This document shows positions 2,702 to 46,748 of a DNA stretch of 64,000 bases, in pieces. Under the pieces are notes generated by a model, which ran no database searches, had not been told where the DNA came from, and saw nothing but the letters and a program-made list of their open reading frames with translations. The translations under genes and the position numbers were made by a program. Numbering within the stretch: position 1 is the stretch's first letter; each line of letters starts with the position of its first letter. Source of the DNA: Paraphysomonas bandaiensis (Eukaryota > Protista > Chrysophyceae); the NCBI GenBank assembly GCA_965644295.1, contig CBFFRP010000258.1, positions 1-64,000 of the forward strand. Direction: 5' to 3'.

Positions 2702-3774
2702 ATGAATAAATATATCCTGAGAGCAGCTGTTTCAGTAATCATCGCCCCCGCCTCTATAGTATTCTGTGACTCGAATCATAGAGAAAAGTCCTTAGAAGAT
2801 AATATCTTACAGGTAGCTGGAAGACTCAAGTCAGGGATCGATGCCAATAATTTACTGTGTCGTCCTAATAAAGATGGTGTTGAAATATGTACTCTGAAGC
2901 GAGCAAGTTATCATAAGAGTGGGTTCCCGCATTTTCGTGTGGCTCGGGCGCGTATTCATGCCCCTTTAGAAGAGGTTTATATATATGTCAGCGTGATATG
3001 TTTATTAACGTATAGTAGGTGTCATCTCTGTGGCAGAGTCAAGGAGCACGAAAGAATTGGGACAGTAATTACTGTGACGATAGTCAAGTCGTAAAGGAAT
3101 ATAACAGTGAAACTTCACTAGCATATATACGCGGCAGACCGGGTTATGTTATTCCTGCTCGTGACTATGCTTTCCACATATGCCGAGTACCTGGGGGGAT
3201 AGTTGGGCTAAATGACTTTATGAGTGTTGCATTTATTAATGTGGATGCAGCCAATGCGGTACCAACTTGTGGTACAGCGTGGGCAGTCCGCGGTAACATG
3301 AATAGCATTCTTCTTCTCCGCCCTGTTAATGCAGAGATAACTGATGTAACATATATTGTTGAGTGTTCAGTAAATGGGTGGATATTTCCATTTGTAGCGG
3401 AATATTTTGCTGATACTATCGTAAAAACTTTAACCAACATGAAGAAGGAATTGGAAGCTGATGAAAATTCTGAAGAAGCCACGGCTTCAATCGAAGAAGC
3501 CGCACGCCTTAGATTCCAGCGTCACCTTGCCCAGAAAGAAGAAAACAAGGCAACAACGATTGTCAATGATATTACTTCGAACCCTGAAGATCTTCAAGAA
3601 ACTTTAGCCATTTTGCAGCGGCGATTGAAGGAGATTCAAGCATCGAAACGCACTGATGGCATCGACCTGTCTCGTCTTGAAGATCGTGTCAAAAAGGATA
3701 TTGCTCACATTACTCATAGGCTTCAGCAGCATCGCAACTCTAAATCAAACTACGAATCAAGTAGCTGGAAGTAA
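2702..3774 (+). CDS. START-domain (StAR-related lipid transfer) protein with a C-terminal coiled coil; intron ~2974-3018
   Basis: The spliced ORF gives RKNWD, PARDY, VRG and ITDVTYIVECSVNGWI motifs typical of START domains. A GT...AG intron joins the two ORFs. Confidence 0.8.
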
Positions 3775-37914: not shown

Positions 37915-38589
37915 TTTTTTATTTTCTAATACTGCTATTAGATATATTACAGGCTCGTCGGAATGAGTAAGGTATATTACTATCTGAACATAGTGAGTAA
38001 AAGTTTTCTGTTATGTTGTTTAGGTAATTGTAGTGACGAAATATATTGTTGTAATGTTCCTCACAGTATACAAACTATTGTGGCGAATCGACAAGATACT
38101 GTAGTGTGGTATAAATATCATACCACTGAATCATCTATATTACAACCTGGTGATTTATATTATGAAGGTCTTGTTACCGTGAATGGTGTATTCTGTTGTC
38201 GTGTAATGCTTTAAAAAATTAATGAAGTATGTTTATGACAAATTCTTGTATCTTCTACCATAGAATCTTAGATGTTGTATATTGTTCCTAGACGAAGCGG
38301 TTGTCAAAGTATACGTGTTTCTTTGTGCAATGAATCAGGTTGTTACTGCATCACTAGAACACATTTCACGATTATAGAAGTGCCTATTCTGTGTGAGACA
38401 GCATATCTTAAAGCAAACACAGAAAGAAATCCCACCTTCCGAAAAAGCTAGTTTCTAGATTTATTTTAGACTAAGTTTTGACAACGAATACGCCGTGAAC
38501 TATGAACGTATCCCGAAGCTTCAAAGAAAACGAATGGCTGCTTCTTCCTCTCATAGGGATTTCTGTGAGAAAAAGACGTAACTGAACAG

Positions 38590-39329
38590 CAGGGCTGCGT
38601 AACAATTAATTGCAATTTAATTGTGCCAATTATTGTCTAATTACAAGCACATATAGCATTGTCAACCGTACTTGCATTCCACAGAATCTATTAAAGCGCA
38701 ATTACATAAGGGCCTCTAATCGATGAGGTGCCATAGATTTGCGCAGATCACTCCCATGTTAATTTTTGCTCTACTGTAGTAGTGGAGTAAATATCCAGGT
38801 TTTCGACTGCAAAGAAATAGTAAAAAGCCCTGATAATCCATGTCCATACTGCTGCACATCCAGTTCGTAGTGAACTACAATCCTGCAGTGTCTTGTCAGA
38901 CAGGATCGGAAGAACATGATTGCCACACTACTTATATATATATATATATATGTATAATATATCTAAAACTAGAAGGGTATTGAGCATTCCATATATACTA
39001 GGGATCGAGCTGAACTAAGTTTTGTAGGTCAAAATCAAGAGGAAAGACACATATAATCGACCGTTCAAAGAAACAGTACCTCTCTTTTAATGTAAATAAA
39101 ACGTTACAATGAGAGACCTTCCTTCCCACCATTGTAATAGCCATTATAGTAGCCATTAAGGGCAATAAATGGCCATCGTCCTTAATAATATGTGCTTATA
39201 CTATATAGTTAATAATTGCCAATTAATTGCAATTTAATTGCAATCTTCCAGCGAGCAATTATAATTGTAATTATTACGTATGTTCCATACTATTAAACTG
39301 CAATTACAATTAATTGTTACGCAGCCCTG
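38590..39329. mobile_element. hAT-type MITE (740 bp)
   Basis: 23-bp perfect TIR CAGGGCTGCGTAACAATTAATTG. 8-bp TSD CTGAACAG / CTGAACAA (7/8 match). Subterminal AATTAATTGCAATT repeats. No ORF. Confidence 0.9.
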
Positions 39330-39432
39330 CTGAACAATACTTTCACTCTATTATGCTCAGATTATAAGCTAGAAACATATAGCAACATATTATAATATAC
39401 TCATGATCAATATCACTTGTCAATCACAAAAT

Positions 39433-40195: not shown

Positions 40196-40492
40196 TTCTG
40201 GAGGATAAGTACTTGGAGAAATATTTCTCCGGGAAACTAACGTGAGCAGCAGATAACGTTCTGCCCACTCATAGCCGAATGATTGTGTAATACAAGCGAC
40301 AAGGGACACTTATAAGTAGTGCCACTTGTGGAAACGTCTCTTTGGGCCTTGACGAATAAACAGGCCTCCGGGAATGGGCCAACCTGAAAGGTATCAGGGT
40401 ATTGGGCTGCCTGCTGAAGTCTAGCATCCGGGCTACTTCACCTTAAGGATAGAGAGCGAAATTGGTTGCACCTTGGTGCTTGCGGCGACACA
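40196..40492 (+). mobile_element. Copy E of the retroelement family (ribozyme P4-J4/2-P2' retained, 5' end lost)
   Basis: GGATAAGTACTTGGAGAAATATTTCTCCGGGAAACTAACGTGAG...TGACGAATAAACAGGC...TGCACCTTGGTGCTTG. Confidence 0.8.
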
Positions 40493-41348
40493 CTTTAACC
40501 TAACTCGGGGTGTTACACCAGGTGCAGCTATGTGTATAAAATGAGTGTGTGAATATGACAACAAAGAAGCGAAATGTGAAGATGAATGTGCTTATTACTA
40601 TGCCTTACCAATGCCTGAGCACCCTCAAGCACCTGAAGACGCCTCCTCATACGTGTTAACAGCAAGGTTTGTAACATAATAATAACAGCACATAGAACAT
40701 AAACAACTCATACAGAACCATTCACATTCCATGAACTATCTAGAAACACAGCAGAGAACACAGAACGATATTTTGCAGAAAATTCAGCAACATTTCACAA
40801 TTTTGTGAAGATATCCACCTTCTGGAAGATTCACGTAGAAGCCTATAGGAGGTGCCTTTAACCAACTCAACAGCCACAGACCAAATCAGTTTTATTTTTC
40901 ATTATATTTAACGAATAATACAAATCTATTTTATAGTAATATAGCCAATTTTGATTTATAACAATTAGTGATGAATACAGTCGCATTATTACATGGTAAC
41001 GGACTTAATGATGCTAGCCAAACTGTAATGTGATGACCGTATGAGATAGTGACTGTGTAATGTGTAAGATAGTATGTTCGCTACTTTATGGTTGAAGTGC
41101 AGTTAATCAAACTAGTTAATGATTTTTATATTCACTGAGATATTATTTCTTATTTATAATGCTACTTGTGTTAATTTCTCACAAGACAAAAACTGGAGAG
41201 TTTAACTCTAATGAATAGTTGAAGCTAACATAGCTTATTCTGCTTAATAATAGTGCAGCTTGATGATGCTTTGTTCCGTATGACAACAATTAAGAAGAAA
41301 ACCAAGACAAGGATACAAACTGCTCAAAGAATTCTTTCTACAATACTT

Positions 41349-41430
41349 CTTGTTTAATAATAATAGTTTCGCCACTTGTTTAATAATAATAGTTTCGCCA
41401 CTTGTTTAGTAATAATAGTTTCGCCACTTG
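41349..41430. repeat. Three tandem copies of a 26-bp unit CTTGTTTAATAATAATAGTTTCGCCA
   Basis: Read directly, ~45 bp downstream of the transferase stop codon. Confidence 0.9.
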
Positions 41431-41475
41431 AAGTGCTTCTTTTTTGGCTTTAACGAAAATATTCACAATAACTTT

Positions 41476-42356
41476 TTAGTGTGCACCATTGTATTTTGAC
41501 CTTACATGGCCATTTTCATACTTTAATCTAATATATTTGTCATACTCACACATACAATTCTGAACGTTGTGCAACGGCAGCGACATAGCGAGCTCTTCTC
41601 TAATTTGTTGCTGTATATCTAATAGTTCCACATGTCCCTGGTCCTGACTAATAATACTTTTTAATTTCCTGTCGTGATATCTATTCAAACCACGCATACT
41701 TCCTGGCCCAAGGGGCGCCCATGTCAACCAATCTGTTGCTGATCGAAGTGGTTCTATAAACTTTAAGTCTGCAACTACTTGGCCAGCCATAAAGGAAGCG
41801 AATCCCGTTTGCGTCTGTAAGTACTCCCAATATGACTGCAACGTCTCACCACTTCTAGGATTTCGTATTCTCTCGAAAAGAGGTGTAAAAACATGGTCGA
41901 CAGAGTAGTCAATCTTCTCCATTGACAAACCGCCAGTGGAAACAGTGTATGCGCCTGTATAAACCTTCTTCCCTTGAGACTTCCGGGCCTTAAGAATACT
42001 TCGTGTTTTTTCAGCATCCCACTGATGAGGAAACCCGATATCGTCCAAAGTATCTGGCCAGTTGAAATGCCTTGCAACGCATACAGCGAAAGCAATGTTA
42101 GGACTATCCGAGTAAGGTTCCAACCAACTTCTAAATATCCAGCGGGTAACTCGGTCATCTTCCCGGTTCACCTGTAATAAGGTCATCACTTACATTACCT
42201 GAAGAAAACAAAACATACATTGCAGAACTTGTAACTCATCAGTATCCTATCCTGTGTCCAAGGTTTGGGCAACCCCGCCTCCTTCTTGGCTCGAATAGAC
42301 TCTCTTTCCTTGATCCAATGGAATAACTCCCTCTGTTGAGGGCTCAGTGATTTCAT
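41476..42356 (-). CDS. Phage-type amino acid:DNA transferase / alpha-glutamyl-putrescinyl thymine pyrophosphorylase clade 1 (aGPT-Pplase1) homolog, 277 aa; intron 42172-42218
   Basis: Spliced protein: WIKERESIRAKKEAGLPKPWTQDRILMSYKFCN|VNREDDRVTRW...RHFNWPDTL...YTGAY...FMAGQVVADLK...GPGSMRGLNR...VQNCMCEYDKY, the signature motif series of this family. The intron is 47 nt, phase 0, GT-AG. Confidence 0.88.
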
Positions 42357-42766
42357 CGTTGAAGTTTCTGTGCTATTTATAGATAGTTCACATTTGTGAA
42401 CTTTATTTTCGGCTCTTGCGTTACTCAGTAACCAGCAGAGCAGGATATGCAGAGTGTATAGGTATCTACGTAGTAGGAATTCCTATGTATACATGTAGGT
42501 ATACAGTGTATATGGGTAGGATAAATGCGAAAATTAAAAAAATATTGTAGAATTTTTTGCTGCCGAGGTGAGGTTCGTACAACGATAGCAGCAATTATAG
42601 TTGCCACTGTTGTGGTATCTACAAAGTGTCGTCTTTTCAAACTTCTGGATCCTTGCGTTGGGTGTCATATTTTCAACTCCTACTTGCTGGCATCACTTCG
42701 CCGGGACTGTCATGGGTACTGTATTTGAGGGTTTGGAGGTATATTTGTGAATGATACTAGTATCCC

Positions 42767-43277
42767 ATGTATGCAGGTCGGAATGATACGTTATTCAACC
42801 CCGCTGAGCTACTATATCTAGAGGTGTCTTTCGTTAAAAGCGTTGTTGAGTCTTCATGTATCGTGGAGATCCCTGTGAGCGATACTGTGGAATCTCTAAA
42901 GGAAAGAGTATTAGAAGAATTTGACATAGGCATATTGGCAGATAACTACGCTTTATATTCGAATGGTAGTCATTGAGCGTGACTGTGCTATTTTTTAACG
43001 TCATTTCGTAGGAAAGCAGTTGGACGAGTCATTGTATGTTTCGGACTGCGGCCTCGTCGACTGGGATACTATCCATTTAAAAGAAAAGAACAGCAATTCG
43101 AGAATGCGGTCCATAGCTAATTCTCAAGATGTGATTGACTTTGGCTATGAAGATTCCACAGTTGATGACTTTGGCTATAGACATATTTTTCGTAATGTAT
43201 TAAACCTTTTGTGCTGTGTTAGGGATGATGCTGGCGACGATATTGGCGCTTGTTACCTAGAAAATAGTCGTGAGTAG
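42767..43277 (+). CDS. Small ubiquitin-like-domain protein; intron ~42966-43011
   Basis: Spliced VEIPVSDTVESLKERV...YALYSNGKQLDESLYVSDCGL..WDTIHL fits the ubiquitin beta-grasp pattern. There is no C-terminal GG. Confidence 0.7.
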
Positions 43278-44397: not shown

Positions 44398-46748
44398 CTA
44401 CACGACTACCGAAAAAGCAATAACAAATACACTTCCAATTGCAGCTGACCCAATAACAAAGTGATAAATGGCAATCTTAAGGTCAGTATTCGAGTCATTG
44501 GACGCAGAATTTTTCTCAAAATGTAGTGCCACAGTGTGCCCATCCGTTCCAGCGCTTACATGCTCCTTGTCTAGTCTGATTATTCCCCAAATACAGCGTC
44601 TGCAAAGCTCAAACATTGCTAGAAATGGCCCCAATTGGTCACTTAGGGAGTACGAAAAAGGGCTCCCAGAGGATCCCTGGTACATTACAGGTAAGAGAAA
44701 ATTACAGTGACTAAGTATATTCATCAAATACCTGTGGAATCAACGATAGCGTCCAGAGGCCACGCAACAGTAGATCCAGCACCATTGCAACGTAATAGAA
44801 CCCCTTGTTTTTCTTGTACATCAAATGACGTCGAAGGAAAACCTTGTTATCCAACGACCTCCAATCACCGCTAACCAGTGATTTCCAGGATGGGAGCACC
44901 TGGAATAAGCTCCAATCATTAAAAACATCCCAGTATGTTGAGTACAGCGTGGATGTGACGAGAAGAATTATGAACACAATCCTATATATAGAATGAGAAA
45001 GACTAGATGTCTGCTGACTGAGAGGGTGTGACAACCCCATGATCACTACAATCATACTGAGAGTATACTTAACCGCATTGTAGGAGTGAGGCCACACTAG
45101 AATGCCCCATCCAGATGAAGGAGGGGAATCGTGTACCTTACGTAGACACTGCGCAAAACGAAACCACAGAGGGAGCAGTGCAAGAAGACCAGTCAACACA
45201 AACATGTAATTGTCATTACAAGTGCCAAAATTATGCAGTGAACTTGAGTGATCGCGATAGGCACCTGACAAGAGGTAGCATACGGCATAGGCGCAGTTAC
45301 TGTACACCTTAATACAAGAAGTCATGACATCGGCAGTGAAAATCTCCCTCAAGGTTACGGGGCTGAAAGGTGAAGTTACAATGCGGAATATAACAGAAGG
45401 TGAGTAAAGTCGATGGGACGCTGAATCCCGCTGTCGAGCAGCTTGAAGTACACCATGAACAAGATAAAACAGGGCAATGAACATGATAAAGTAGTGGGGT
45501 TCCATATCCAAGTGTAGGACATGTCGACGAGCCTTATAGTATAATATTAGGTCTGCTAAGTAGACCATGCTGATGACAGACTGTTTGGAAAAAAGTTCGT
45601 GCGAACTGGGGGAATGGTCGGCACTGAGGTCTAAGAGCACCAAATAGTTGACATTACAACGTTCCCACACACTCACACTGATTGCCCACAGCCAGTCATA
45701 TACAATTAGATTGCCGATGAAAGAGTAGACATACAACGCCGGATCATTCCAAAGAATGTAGCCATTCTCAGGCTCAACGATGGCCTCCCATAGAAACCAC
45801 ACTACAAGAAGAAGCACGACGCCAATCTGGCAACCCAGATACCAAGAGTCAGTTTCATTGTGGCCACCTTTCGTCATTTTCAGTTTCCCTTTCGCCTCAA
45901 CAAGGTCACCATCGCAGCAAAATTCTGCACATAGCTCAATCGTCCGCTTTTTAACCCGGTTTAGGCGGTGGTCTTTCTTGGCTGTGCTTCCGAAAGAGGT
46001 CTGGTAGACTATAGTATCCATGAGTTCGGGGTAAAGAGGTGTCACATTCTTTGAGCAAAGTTTATCATGCTTCTTGAGAATTTTAATAGCAAGCATACAG
46101 TTAAAAAAAGCAAAAGACTCTAACTCGTCAAGCTTTTTGTATATGGCGACATACGCACGTAGAACTGACAGCTCGCGATCTTTCTTCTGTTTGCGAACAG
46201 ACTTTGCAAGGCCGACATTTACCTCCATTGATGGAACAACACCTTGTTCATTCGCCTTTTCCAGAGATGTAGTTAACTGCTCTTCTGCTTTATGAAGCGT
46301 GTGTGTAAAAAACTCAGCTACCCTTTCTATTTCCTTCAGGAACATTTCCACGAACACAGTCTCATTCCAGTCCTTTTTCTTCCCTTTCAATGGACCAGTG
46401 CTGGGCAATTCAATCTCGTGTGATTTGCGCTCCTCAATATCACTAAACTCCGACTTTTGATGATCGTCAGGTATCGCTGTAGCTTCAACTTCCTGATTCA
46501 CGCTATTGCCAGTACACAGTCCATACCTTTGGAGAAACCGCTCGTCCTGCGAACTCCAAAGACTTTGAAAGGCATGCCTACACAGATCATCAGAATATGC
46601 GTAACATTCTGTTGATAAGACAATACATTGTGGTATCTTTCACAGATGAGTCTCTTTGAATATAATTCTTCAGTGTATCGTATTCGAGATAATGCACAGA
46701 CCATTTCCGGATGATATGTTCCTTGAAATTCTTCTCCAACCGAACCAT
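44398..46748 (-). CDS. SPX-EXS domain protein (XPR1/SYG1/PHO1 family phosphate exporter)
   Basis: SPX: MVRLEKNF..WSVHYLEYDTLK and KILKKHDK. EXS: ADVMTS, RFAQCLRK, NAVKY, YSTYWDVFNDW, LLLRGLW, ELCRRCIWGIIRLDKEH. Confidence 0.92.

Follow-up and report, generated by a model that had tools for sequence, protein, structure and literature searches.

A spliced nuclear gene of the phage family aGPT-Pplase clade 1 in the protist Paraphysomonas bandaiensis

What does an enzyme from the thymine-modification regions of bacteriophages do when it stands alone in the nucleus of a protist? The question is raised by a gene on contig CBFFRP010000258.1 of the chrysophyte Paraphysomonas bandaiensis. The first 64,000 nucleotides (nt) of this contig, referred to here as the window, were analysed, and the coding part of the gene lies at positions 41476 to 42356 on the minus strand. 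Its product of 277 amino acids belongs to Pfam family PF18723 (aGPT-Pplase clade 1), whose members are among the commonest genes of phage thymine-modification regions. That the gene, its splice, its family and its phage origin have all been correctly identified is highly probable. For the function, the best overall explanation, favoured with modest confidence, is a phage-derived nuclear gene whose product is a helix-hairpin-helix (HhH) base-flipping enzyme acting on C5-substituted uracil.

Family membership

Both exons match PF18723 above its cut-off of 25 bits in profile searches made with the exon translations. The match of exon 1 extends over profile positions 5-42 (E 7.6e-11, 42.3 bits) and that of exon 2 over positions 45-277 of 281 (E 6.1e-24, 85.3 bits). 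Because the two matches are collinear across the intron, joining them restores an unbroken PF18723 domain. A genome-wide search agrees, identifying PF18723 at the same gene, and both exons likewise match PHROG 2396. The membership in aGPT-Pplase clade 1 claimed by the initial annotation is thereby borne out.

PF18723 is the sole significant Pfam family on the 277-residue protein; no P-loop kinase domain is among its significant Pfam matches. The protein gives no match to PF18724 at E<=1, and searches of NCBIfam and PADLOC assign it to no family.

The two Pfam families represent different clades of aGPT-Pplase. PF18723 is clade 1, presently named HMUDK_hel in Pfam after the helical domain that is fused to a kinase in phage SP10, where kinase activity is independent of the domain. 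PF18724 is clade 2, presently named ADDT. The demonstrated transferases of glycine, serine or putrescine to 5-phosphomethyl-deoxyuridine are clade-2 proteins: M6 gp51, PaMx11 gp46, ViI gp247, and PhiW-14 gp109 (Lee et al. 2021, PMC8989533). Later structural work covers clade 2 only, namely PUGT (PDB 8Z2M/8Z2N; PMC11472151) and DADT (PMC13458397), and the enzyme of phage 15599 is likewise a reconstituted clade-2 transferase (reconstituted set: PMC8989533, PMC11472151, PMC13458397). No sequence or profile similarity to ADDT, PUGT or DADT is detectable in the window protein. Lacking a P-loop domain, it is not a kinase, and with no PF18724 match it does not belong with the proven transferases.

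An annotation trap is thus corrected: "aGPT-Pplase1" is not to be equated with "amino acid:DNA transferase", the label that the gene had first been given.

Within clade 1, the window protein shares its Pfam family, at 31-34% identity, with proteins of cultured thymidine-hypermodifying phages (Pam3 gp50, the M6 gp55/YuA gp14 group, ViI gp160, and the C-terminal domain of SP10 gp186). The clade-1 genes of these cultured phages sit in cassettes together with a 5-hydroxymethyl-deoxyuridine (5-hmdU) DNA kinase, ADDT, Nmad5, and radical-SAM/PLP enzymes. The protist gene is a new eukaryotic member of PF18723. Eukaryotic homologs as such were already known, in agreement with the mention of sporadic cases in the initial annotation (basidiomycete fungi, PMC5889632).

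Gene structure and expression

The gene consists of two exons on the minus strand. As read from the sequence, the spliced coding sequence of 834 nt specifies 277 amino acids and contains no internal stop codons. Its parts are as follows.

42219..42356, minus strand: coding part of exon 1, 46 codons, with ATG at 42356 and the end ...TTC TGC AAT at 42219 (sequence reading; PF18723; PHROG 2396).
42172..42218, minus strand: intron of 47 nt, GT-AG, GTATGT...TTACAG, phase 0 (skipped exactly in the X1 and X2 transcript contigs, kept in the DNA-type run X12).
41476..42171, minus strand: coding part of exon 2, 231 codons plus TAA at 41478-41476, starting GTG AAC CGG at 42171 (PF18723 match; 328 homologs, best 70% identity).
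41379..42405, minus strand: approximate transcript, with a 5' untranslated region (UTR) of about 49 nt and a 3' UTR of about 97 nt, taken from the ends of the 979-nt X1 contig, which are approximate only.

For the splice, four of sixteen public sequencing runs were compared with positions 41300-42500. X1 and X2 represent the same organism in two studies; each provides one contig (979 nt and 950 nt) that omits exactly the 47 nt. The splice join in these contigs has an ambiguity of 2 nt, which resolves to GT..AG on the minus strand. In X12, a DNA-like run of the same organism, the intron is present in a 2262-nt contig. Finally, X4, a polyA marine metatranscriptome, contains an identical 441-nt piece of exon 2.

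The initial annotation had described an intact 277-residue protein with a full series of family motifs, split by a 47-nt GT-AG intron at 42172-42218. Every motif that it listed is present in a coding sequence that is open throughout, and the RNA-type contigs X1 and X2 lack precisely the intron. Its remark that the list of open reading frames (ORFs) misses exon 1 holds for the join, which is missed; both exons are nonetheless listed, as separate ORFs at 42195..42356 and 41476..42189.

Two differences between the assembly and the runs lie in the 5' UTR. At 42374 all three runs that cover the site (X1, X2, and X12) have A in place of T, and at 42376 one base is missing in X1 and X12. These differences are either assembly errors or strain differences.

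Phage origin

The 328 homologs were found with a word-based search. The closest, at 65-70% identity, include metagenome proteins and one protein annotated in the brown alga Ectocarpus fasciculatus. A transcript homolog from MMETSP has 55% identity. GTDB genomes reach at most 42% identity, the one exception being a partial match at 48%; these GTDB values are measured against P0008, the top row of the query alignment. More than 550 relatives are found in IMG/VR, and neighbours in the ESM Atlas are 88-97% viral.

Some of these relatives can be placed by their surroundings. Two of the closest homologs, P0001 and P0006, have eukaryotic genes beside them on their contigs (Ndc80, CwfJ), and in each a GT-AG intron of 51-52 nt interrupts the coding sequence at the site of the intron in the window gene. 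P0014, P0016, and P0037 (58-64% identity), as well as P0071 and P0099 (about 50%), lie on phage contigs. The order of genes in the phage contigs is SNF2 helicase, Pam3_gp32, DUF7307, Pam3_Gp34, PDDEXK nuclease, AEP primase, UvrD-type helicase, and then the PF18723 gene. The remainder of the same Pam3-like replication module follows, with a thymidylate-synthase-like gene, an HD nucleotidase, DUF3310, and PolA.

Trees built with FastTree (212 rows) and with IQ-TREE under LG+C20 (75 rows) place the window protein among eukaryotic sequences, in a small clade that is itself nested within uncultured Pam3-like phages. The window protein, the intron-bearing group, and the Ectocarpus-like group form a clade of 11 rows (support 99/69), which lies within a clade of 37 rows (100/99) that also contains the phage-context proteins P0014, P0016, and P0037. 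The sister of the 37-row clade (27 rows) and the outgroups are phage. Because the eukaryotic clade is nested among phages under the outgroup root, the direction of transfer appears to be from phage to eukaryote.

The best tree unites the eukaryotic proteins, with that of MMETSP among them, in one weakly supported clade, and a single clade of intron-bearing genes is not rejected (p-AU 0.40). The simplest reading of these relationships is one transfer from the Pam3-like phage group into a eukaryotic lineage, which would have been followed by vertical descent and intron gain. No paper on the marine eukaryotic clade or on its phage source was found in the literature.

The uncultured marine Pam3-like phage proteins P0014, P0016, and P0037 have the same length and stand-alone architecture as the window protein, retain all invariant residues, and share its clade. 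Their genes differ in being intronless and in lying between a UvrD-type helicase and a thymidylate-synthase-like gene; the window gene is interrupted by an intron, lies among eukaryotic genes, and lacks these partners.

The introns of P0001 and P0006 (L010 at about 3650-3702, L012 at about 3150-3200) are offset by 1 nt from that of the window gene, giving phase 1 instead of phase 0. Either sliding of the intron or two gains at a single proto-splice site could explain this offset.

Introns are absent from the homolog of Ectocarpus fasciculatus and from a related one in a metagenome (L008 1-9153, L005 1-9405). Both homologs are arranged head-to-head with homologous giant ORFs of 9882 and 7904 amino acids, which carry LamG/TIG repeats and are 48% identical. 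An ORF next to the homolog on L008 carries a bacterial-type Tlde1 domain, so the host of the L008 and L005 contigs is uncertain. A gene order shared between the window and these loci was considered and rejected, the window having no giant LamG/TIG ORF.

The MMETSP homolog, P0033, has an N-terminal extension (residues 1-65) that the window protein lacks; a basic stretch in it, PKKKKSSSKKRPRD, resembles a nuclear localisation signal.

Conservation

In an alignment of 112 homologs, the window protein retains 30 of 30 invariant columns and 84 of the 86 columns conserved at 90% or more. Both changes, M to V and R to K, are conservative. Nonsynonymous divergence (dN) from the eukaryotic relatives is 0.28-0.32; synonymous divergence (dS) is saturated, so dN/dS cannot be computed. 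With dN at this level against saturated dS and the invariant columns all retained, the gene is under lasting purifying selection that preserves the chemistry it has in phages. The locus also documents a transfer from phage to eukaryote, after which came intron gain and continued purifying selection.

Fold and candidate active site

Sequence searches of the PDB with the protein and with the 112-sequence profile return nothing at E<=10. The full-length homolog P0010, which is 63-65% identical to the window protein, was modelled with AlphaFold2 from the 112-sequence alignment. The model is all-helical, with a mean pLDDT of 95.5. Foldseek finds weak matches to HhH glycosylases and to 8Z2N, all with E>0.1. 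Structural alignment of the model with VIA-align gives the following matches.

PUGT/ADDT, 8Z2N: Z 11.8, 209 residues, root-mean-square deviation 3.6 Å.
Archaeal Ogg: Z 10.8-11.1 (MjOgg 11.1).
Mag1: Z 9.7.
QNG1 (7UGK): Z 9.5.
EndoIII: Z 8.7.

Every top match belongs to the HhH glycosylase class. The matches to Ogg, Mag1, EndoIII, and MutY (Z 8-11 over 165-190 residues) indicate a two-lobed helical HhH fold. Three candidate functional elements are apparent in the sequence of the window protein.

41761..41805, minus strand: helix-hairpin-helix motif GFASFMAGQVVADLK, residues 169-183 (direct reading; at the hairpin between two helices in the model).
41731..41733, minus strand: Asp193, invariant, 24 residues past the hairpin, a spacing like that of the HhH-GPD catalytic Asp (candidate role, from spacing only).
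41536..41562, minus strand: QNCMCEYDK, candidate active-site helix with Q250, N251, C254, E255, and K258 (invariant or nearly invariant columns).

In the hairpin, Q177, A180, D181, and K183 are invariant in the 112 homologs. The family consensus there is GLGSFMAGQVV, and the window protein has GFAS at the hairpin. In HhH-GPD glycosylases the catalytic Asp lies about 20 residues past the hairpin. The window protein shares with these enzymes (archaeal Ogg, Mag1/AlkA, EndoIII, MutY) the fold class and the HhH hairpin, and by its spacing Asp193 is a candidate counterpart of their catalytic Asp. It differs from them in its low identity of about 10%, in having no iron-sulfur cluster motif and no catalytic Lys, and in its extra invariant Cys/Glu/Lys helix.

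A counterpart of that helix may be found in clade 2. PUGT has the catalytic residue Cys247 and the metal ligands Glu243 and Thr244 (PMC11472151). In a weak local alignment, Q-N-x-x-C of the window protein faces E-T-x-x-C of a clade-2 protein, and the structurally aligned ranges are offset in keeping with this pairing (model 260 against chain 255). Cys254 would then lie opposite the catalytic Cys247 of PUGT. ADDT, PUGT, and DADT (8Z2M/8Z2N) provide the best structural match and have in common with the model an HhH-containing two-lobed helical fold, with a Cys on a C-terminal helix that apparently corresponds. They differ in their metal ligands, Glu and Thr, which appear to be Gln and Asn in the window protein, and demonstrated transfer is confined to clade 2. 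Taken jointly, an HhH fold and a DNA base as target are reasonably probable.

Partner genes

In 80 viral loci (IMG/VR L026-L105), genes within 8 kb of the PF18723 relative were counted.

Thymidylate-synthase-like: 70/80 viral loci.
PolA: 46/80 viral loci.
TAGT glycosyltransferase: 42/80 viral loci.
P-loop kinase: 15/80 viral loci.
ADDT: 5/80 viral loci.

Most of the closest phage relatives are without kinase and ADDT, and at the close phage loci of P0014, P0016, and P0037 neither is seen. At another close phage locus, L006, the thymidylate-synthase-like gene has its best cultured matches in the homologs of Pam3, M6/PaMx11-like, and ViI-like phages, which hypermodify thymidine; in one ViI-like record the homolog is labelled deoxyuridylate hydroxymethyltransferase. 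By sequence, the phage gene is probably a deoxyuridine monophosphate (dUMP) hydroxymethylase. Given these counts and matches, the ancestral setting of the gene is beside a probable maker of 5-hydroxymethyluracil (5hmU), not beside a kinase plus a transferase. In Pam3-like phages (also at L003, L006, L106, and L107) the recurring combination of PF18723 with the thymidylate-synthase-like gene, often with TAGT and rarely with kinase or ADDT, suggests a separate, uncharacterised base-modification module.

In the protist, partners were sought by single queries on the draft assembly, in which "not found" falls short of proven absence. The queries found no relative of the Pam3 5-hmdU kinase, no ADDT, and no TAGT. 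One canonical thymidylate synthase is present, and no second copy was found. Tet_JBP was also not found, in a weak search whose controls likewise gave no signal. The initial annotation had supposed that the protist might hypermodify thymine, or else have repurposed the fold for repair, and had pointed to a 5-hmdU DNA kinase and a TET/JBP enzyme as the partners to look for in the rest of the genome. As the genome search found none of the partner enzymes, hypermodification of thymine is unsupported.

Function

The favoured explanation can be set out as a series of steps. An ancestor of the protist very probably acquired the gene from uncultured marine Pam3-like bacteriophages, and purifying selection has maintained it since. 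The product would be an HhH, base-flipping DNA enzyme that acts on a C5-substituted uracil, for example 5hmU. The helix with the invariant Cys254 and Glu255 may be used in the way of the clade-2 catalytic Cys, to attack C6 of the pyrimidine and so permit chemistry at C5, with Asp193 at the classical glycosylase position. Such Cys-dependent chemistry at C5 is a tentative element of the scheme. The eukaryotic protein would act alone, without the phage kinase, transferase, and hydroxymethylase. With no phage partners, processing or repair of rare 5-substituted uracils is to be expected, rather than bulk rewriting of thymine.

That a eukaryote retains a clade-1 gene by itself, with all invariant residues and no partner found, argues for a self-sufficient function. 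In its boldest form, rather improbable at present, this would mean that a group of marine protists kept a phage clade-1 enzyme for a new reaction on 5-substituted uracil in nuclear DNA, which could be direct reversal of 5hmU or formation of a new base. If so, the gene would reveal the missing function of clade 1 and a eukaryotic DNA-base pathway that needs no 5-hmdU kinase. In any case, the protist gene offers a clean system in which to find the function of clade 1.

Several observations weigh against an HhH enzyme acting on C5-substituted uracil in DNA. Between all-helical folds, a Z near 12 can arise from a common helix arrangement, so the structural matches are suggestive and not decisive, and HhH-like folds can also act on free nucleotides, as in QNG1. 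The metal ligands Glu243 and Thr244 of PUGT would be replaced by Gln and Asn. Comparison of clade 1 with clade 2 by hhalign (Pam3 gp47; a 7-sequence clade-2 alignment) gives a probability below 1% in default, global, and local modes; because this profile comparison is not significant, homology between the clades has to be argued from structure only. The literature holds no demonstrated activity for any clade-1 member. Reconstitution of the M6 pathway still yielded product when gp52, gp53, and gp55 were omitted, gp55 being the clade-1 protein as judged by gene order in the M6-like phage SN1. In SP10, gp186 combines a kinase with a clade-1 domain, and it still acts as a kinase once that domain is deleted. 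Lastly, no source of 5hmU was found in the protist genome.

The first alternative, an unlikely one, is that the protein has been recruited to base-excision repair as a monofunctional HhH-type DNA glycosylase for a pyrimidine lesion such as 5hmU, uracil, or 5-formyluracil. This would agree with the fold matches to MjOgg (Z 11.1), Mag1 (9.7), and EndoIII (8.7), with a canonical HhH hairpin followed after about 24 residues by an invariant Asp, and with the lack of Lys, on direct reading, at the position that marks bifunctional enzymes. The invariant Cys/Glu/Lys helix is, however, foreign to glycosylases. Excision of thymine or uracil by an enzyme beside a phage hydroxymethylase is speculative, and no member of PF18723 has a known activity.

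Alternatively, the enzyme may act on free nucleotides, cleaning or salvaging the pool of 5-substituted dUMP much as the HhH-like queuosine-monophosphate glycosylase QNG1 acts on its own substrate. QNG1 is among the structural matches (7UGK, Z 9.5), and the phage gene lies within a block of nucleotide metabolism (thymidylate-synthase-like gene, HD 5'-deoxynucleotidase, dUTPase). Against this stand the HhH hairpin, which is a motif for binding the DNA backbone, the DNA-bound state of the enzyme that gives the best structural match, and the fusion of a PF18723 domain to a DNA kinase in SP10. Action on the nucleotide pool is accordingly given little weight.

The reading first proposed for the gene, in which a DNA transferase exchanges the phosphate of kinase-activated 5hmU for an amine or amino acid and the protist thereby hypermodifies its own or viral thymine, is very unlikely. 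The best structural match is indeed to clade-2 PUGT (Z 11.8), with an invariant Cys-Glu pair on the corresponding C-terminal helix, and SP10 shows no glycosylase-like domain other than the clade-1 domain attached to its kinase (PMC5889632). The demonstrated enzymes are nevertheless all of clade 2, to which the window protein has no PF18724 match. The transfer chemistry had been called established for aGPT-Pplase1, but M6 gp55 and the clade-1 domain of SP10 gp186 are dispensable in vitro. A kinase homolog, ADDT, a second thymidylate synthase of the hydroxymethylase type, and Tet_JBP were not found in the genome, and in the phages kinase and ADDT are infrequent neighbours that are missing from all three of the close loci named above.

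A decaying or neutral leftover of transfer, or a contaminating phage or bacterial contig without function in the protist, would suit the overwhelmingly viral distribution of PF18723 and the partner genes not found, but is scarcely credible for a gene that is spliced and expressed in a polyA library, is flanked by eukaryotic genes and host repeats, keeps all invariant residues at a dN of about 0.3 with saturated dS, and has orthologs on other eukaryotic contigs with an intron at the same site.

Genomic setting

The assembly comprises 62.5 Mb in 669 contigs, and a genome search finds the PF18723 family in single copy. Dispersed repeats and a divergent ORF lie close to the gene.

38587..39340, no strand assigned: dispersed host repeat, about 745 bp long and bearing inverted ends, on the downstream side of the gene (other contigs carry dozens of copies, 75-89% identical).
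40490..40886, no strand assigned: dispersed host repeat, about 395 bp long, likewise on the downstream side (other contigs carry at least 25 copies, 86-88% identical).
42767..42973, plus strand: divergent neighbour ORF with a weak ubiquitin-like match (PF00240, E 8e-4; score 19.6 bits, cut-off 25.4).
41349..41430, no strand assigned: tandem repeat, 26 nt x 3.2, at the 3' end of the transcript (Tandem Repeats Finder; unique in the genome).

Because eukaryotic genes and dispersed host repeats flank it, the gene is nuclear and not a contaminant. The repeats and eukaryotic genes agree with the initial description of host surroundings and no phage contig. The same description placed the gene head-to-head with a host ubiquitin-like gene; a divergent ORF is present there, but its ubiquitin match is below threshold.

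The other genes of the window encode an EXS/SPX protein, Nrap, a four-domain voltage-gated calcium channel, a MIF4G protein, and a response-regulator protein. The best database relatives of the EXS/SPX phosphate-transporter-like gene (44714-46501, minus strand) have at most 58% identity, which indicates that the lineage is poorly sampled.

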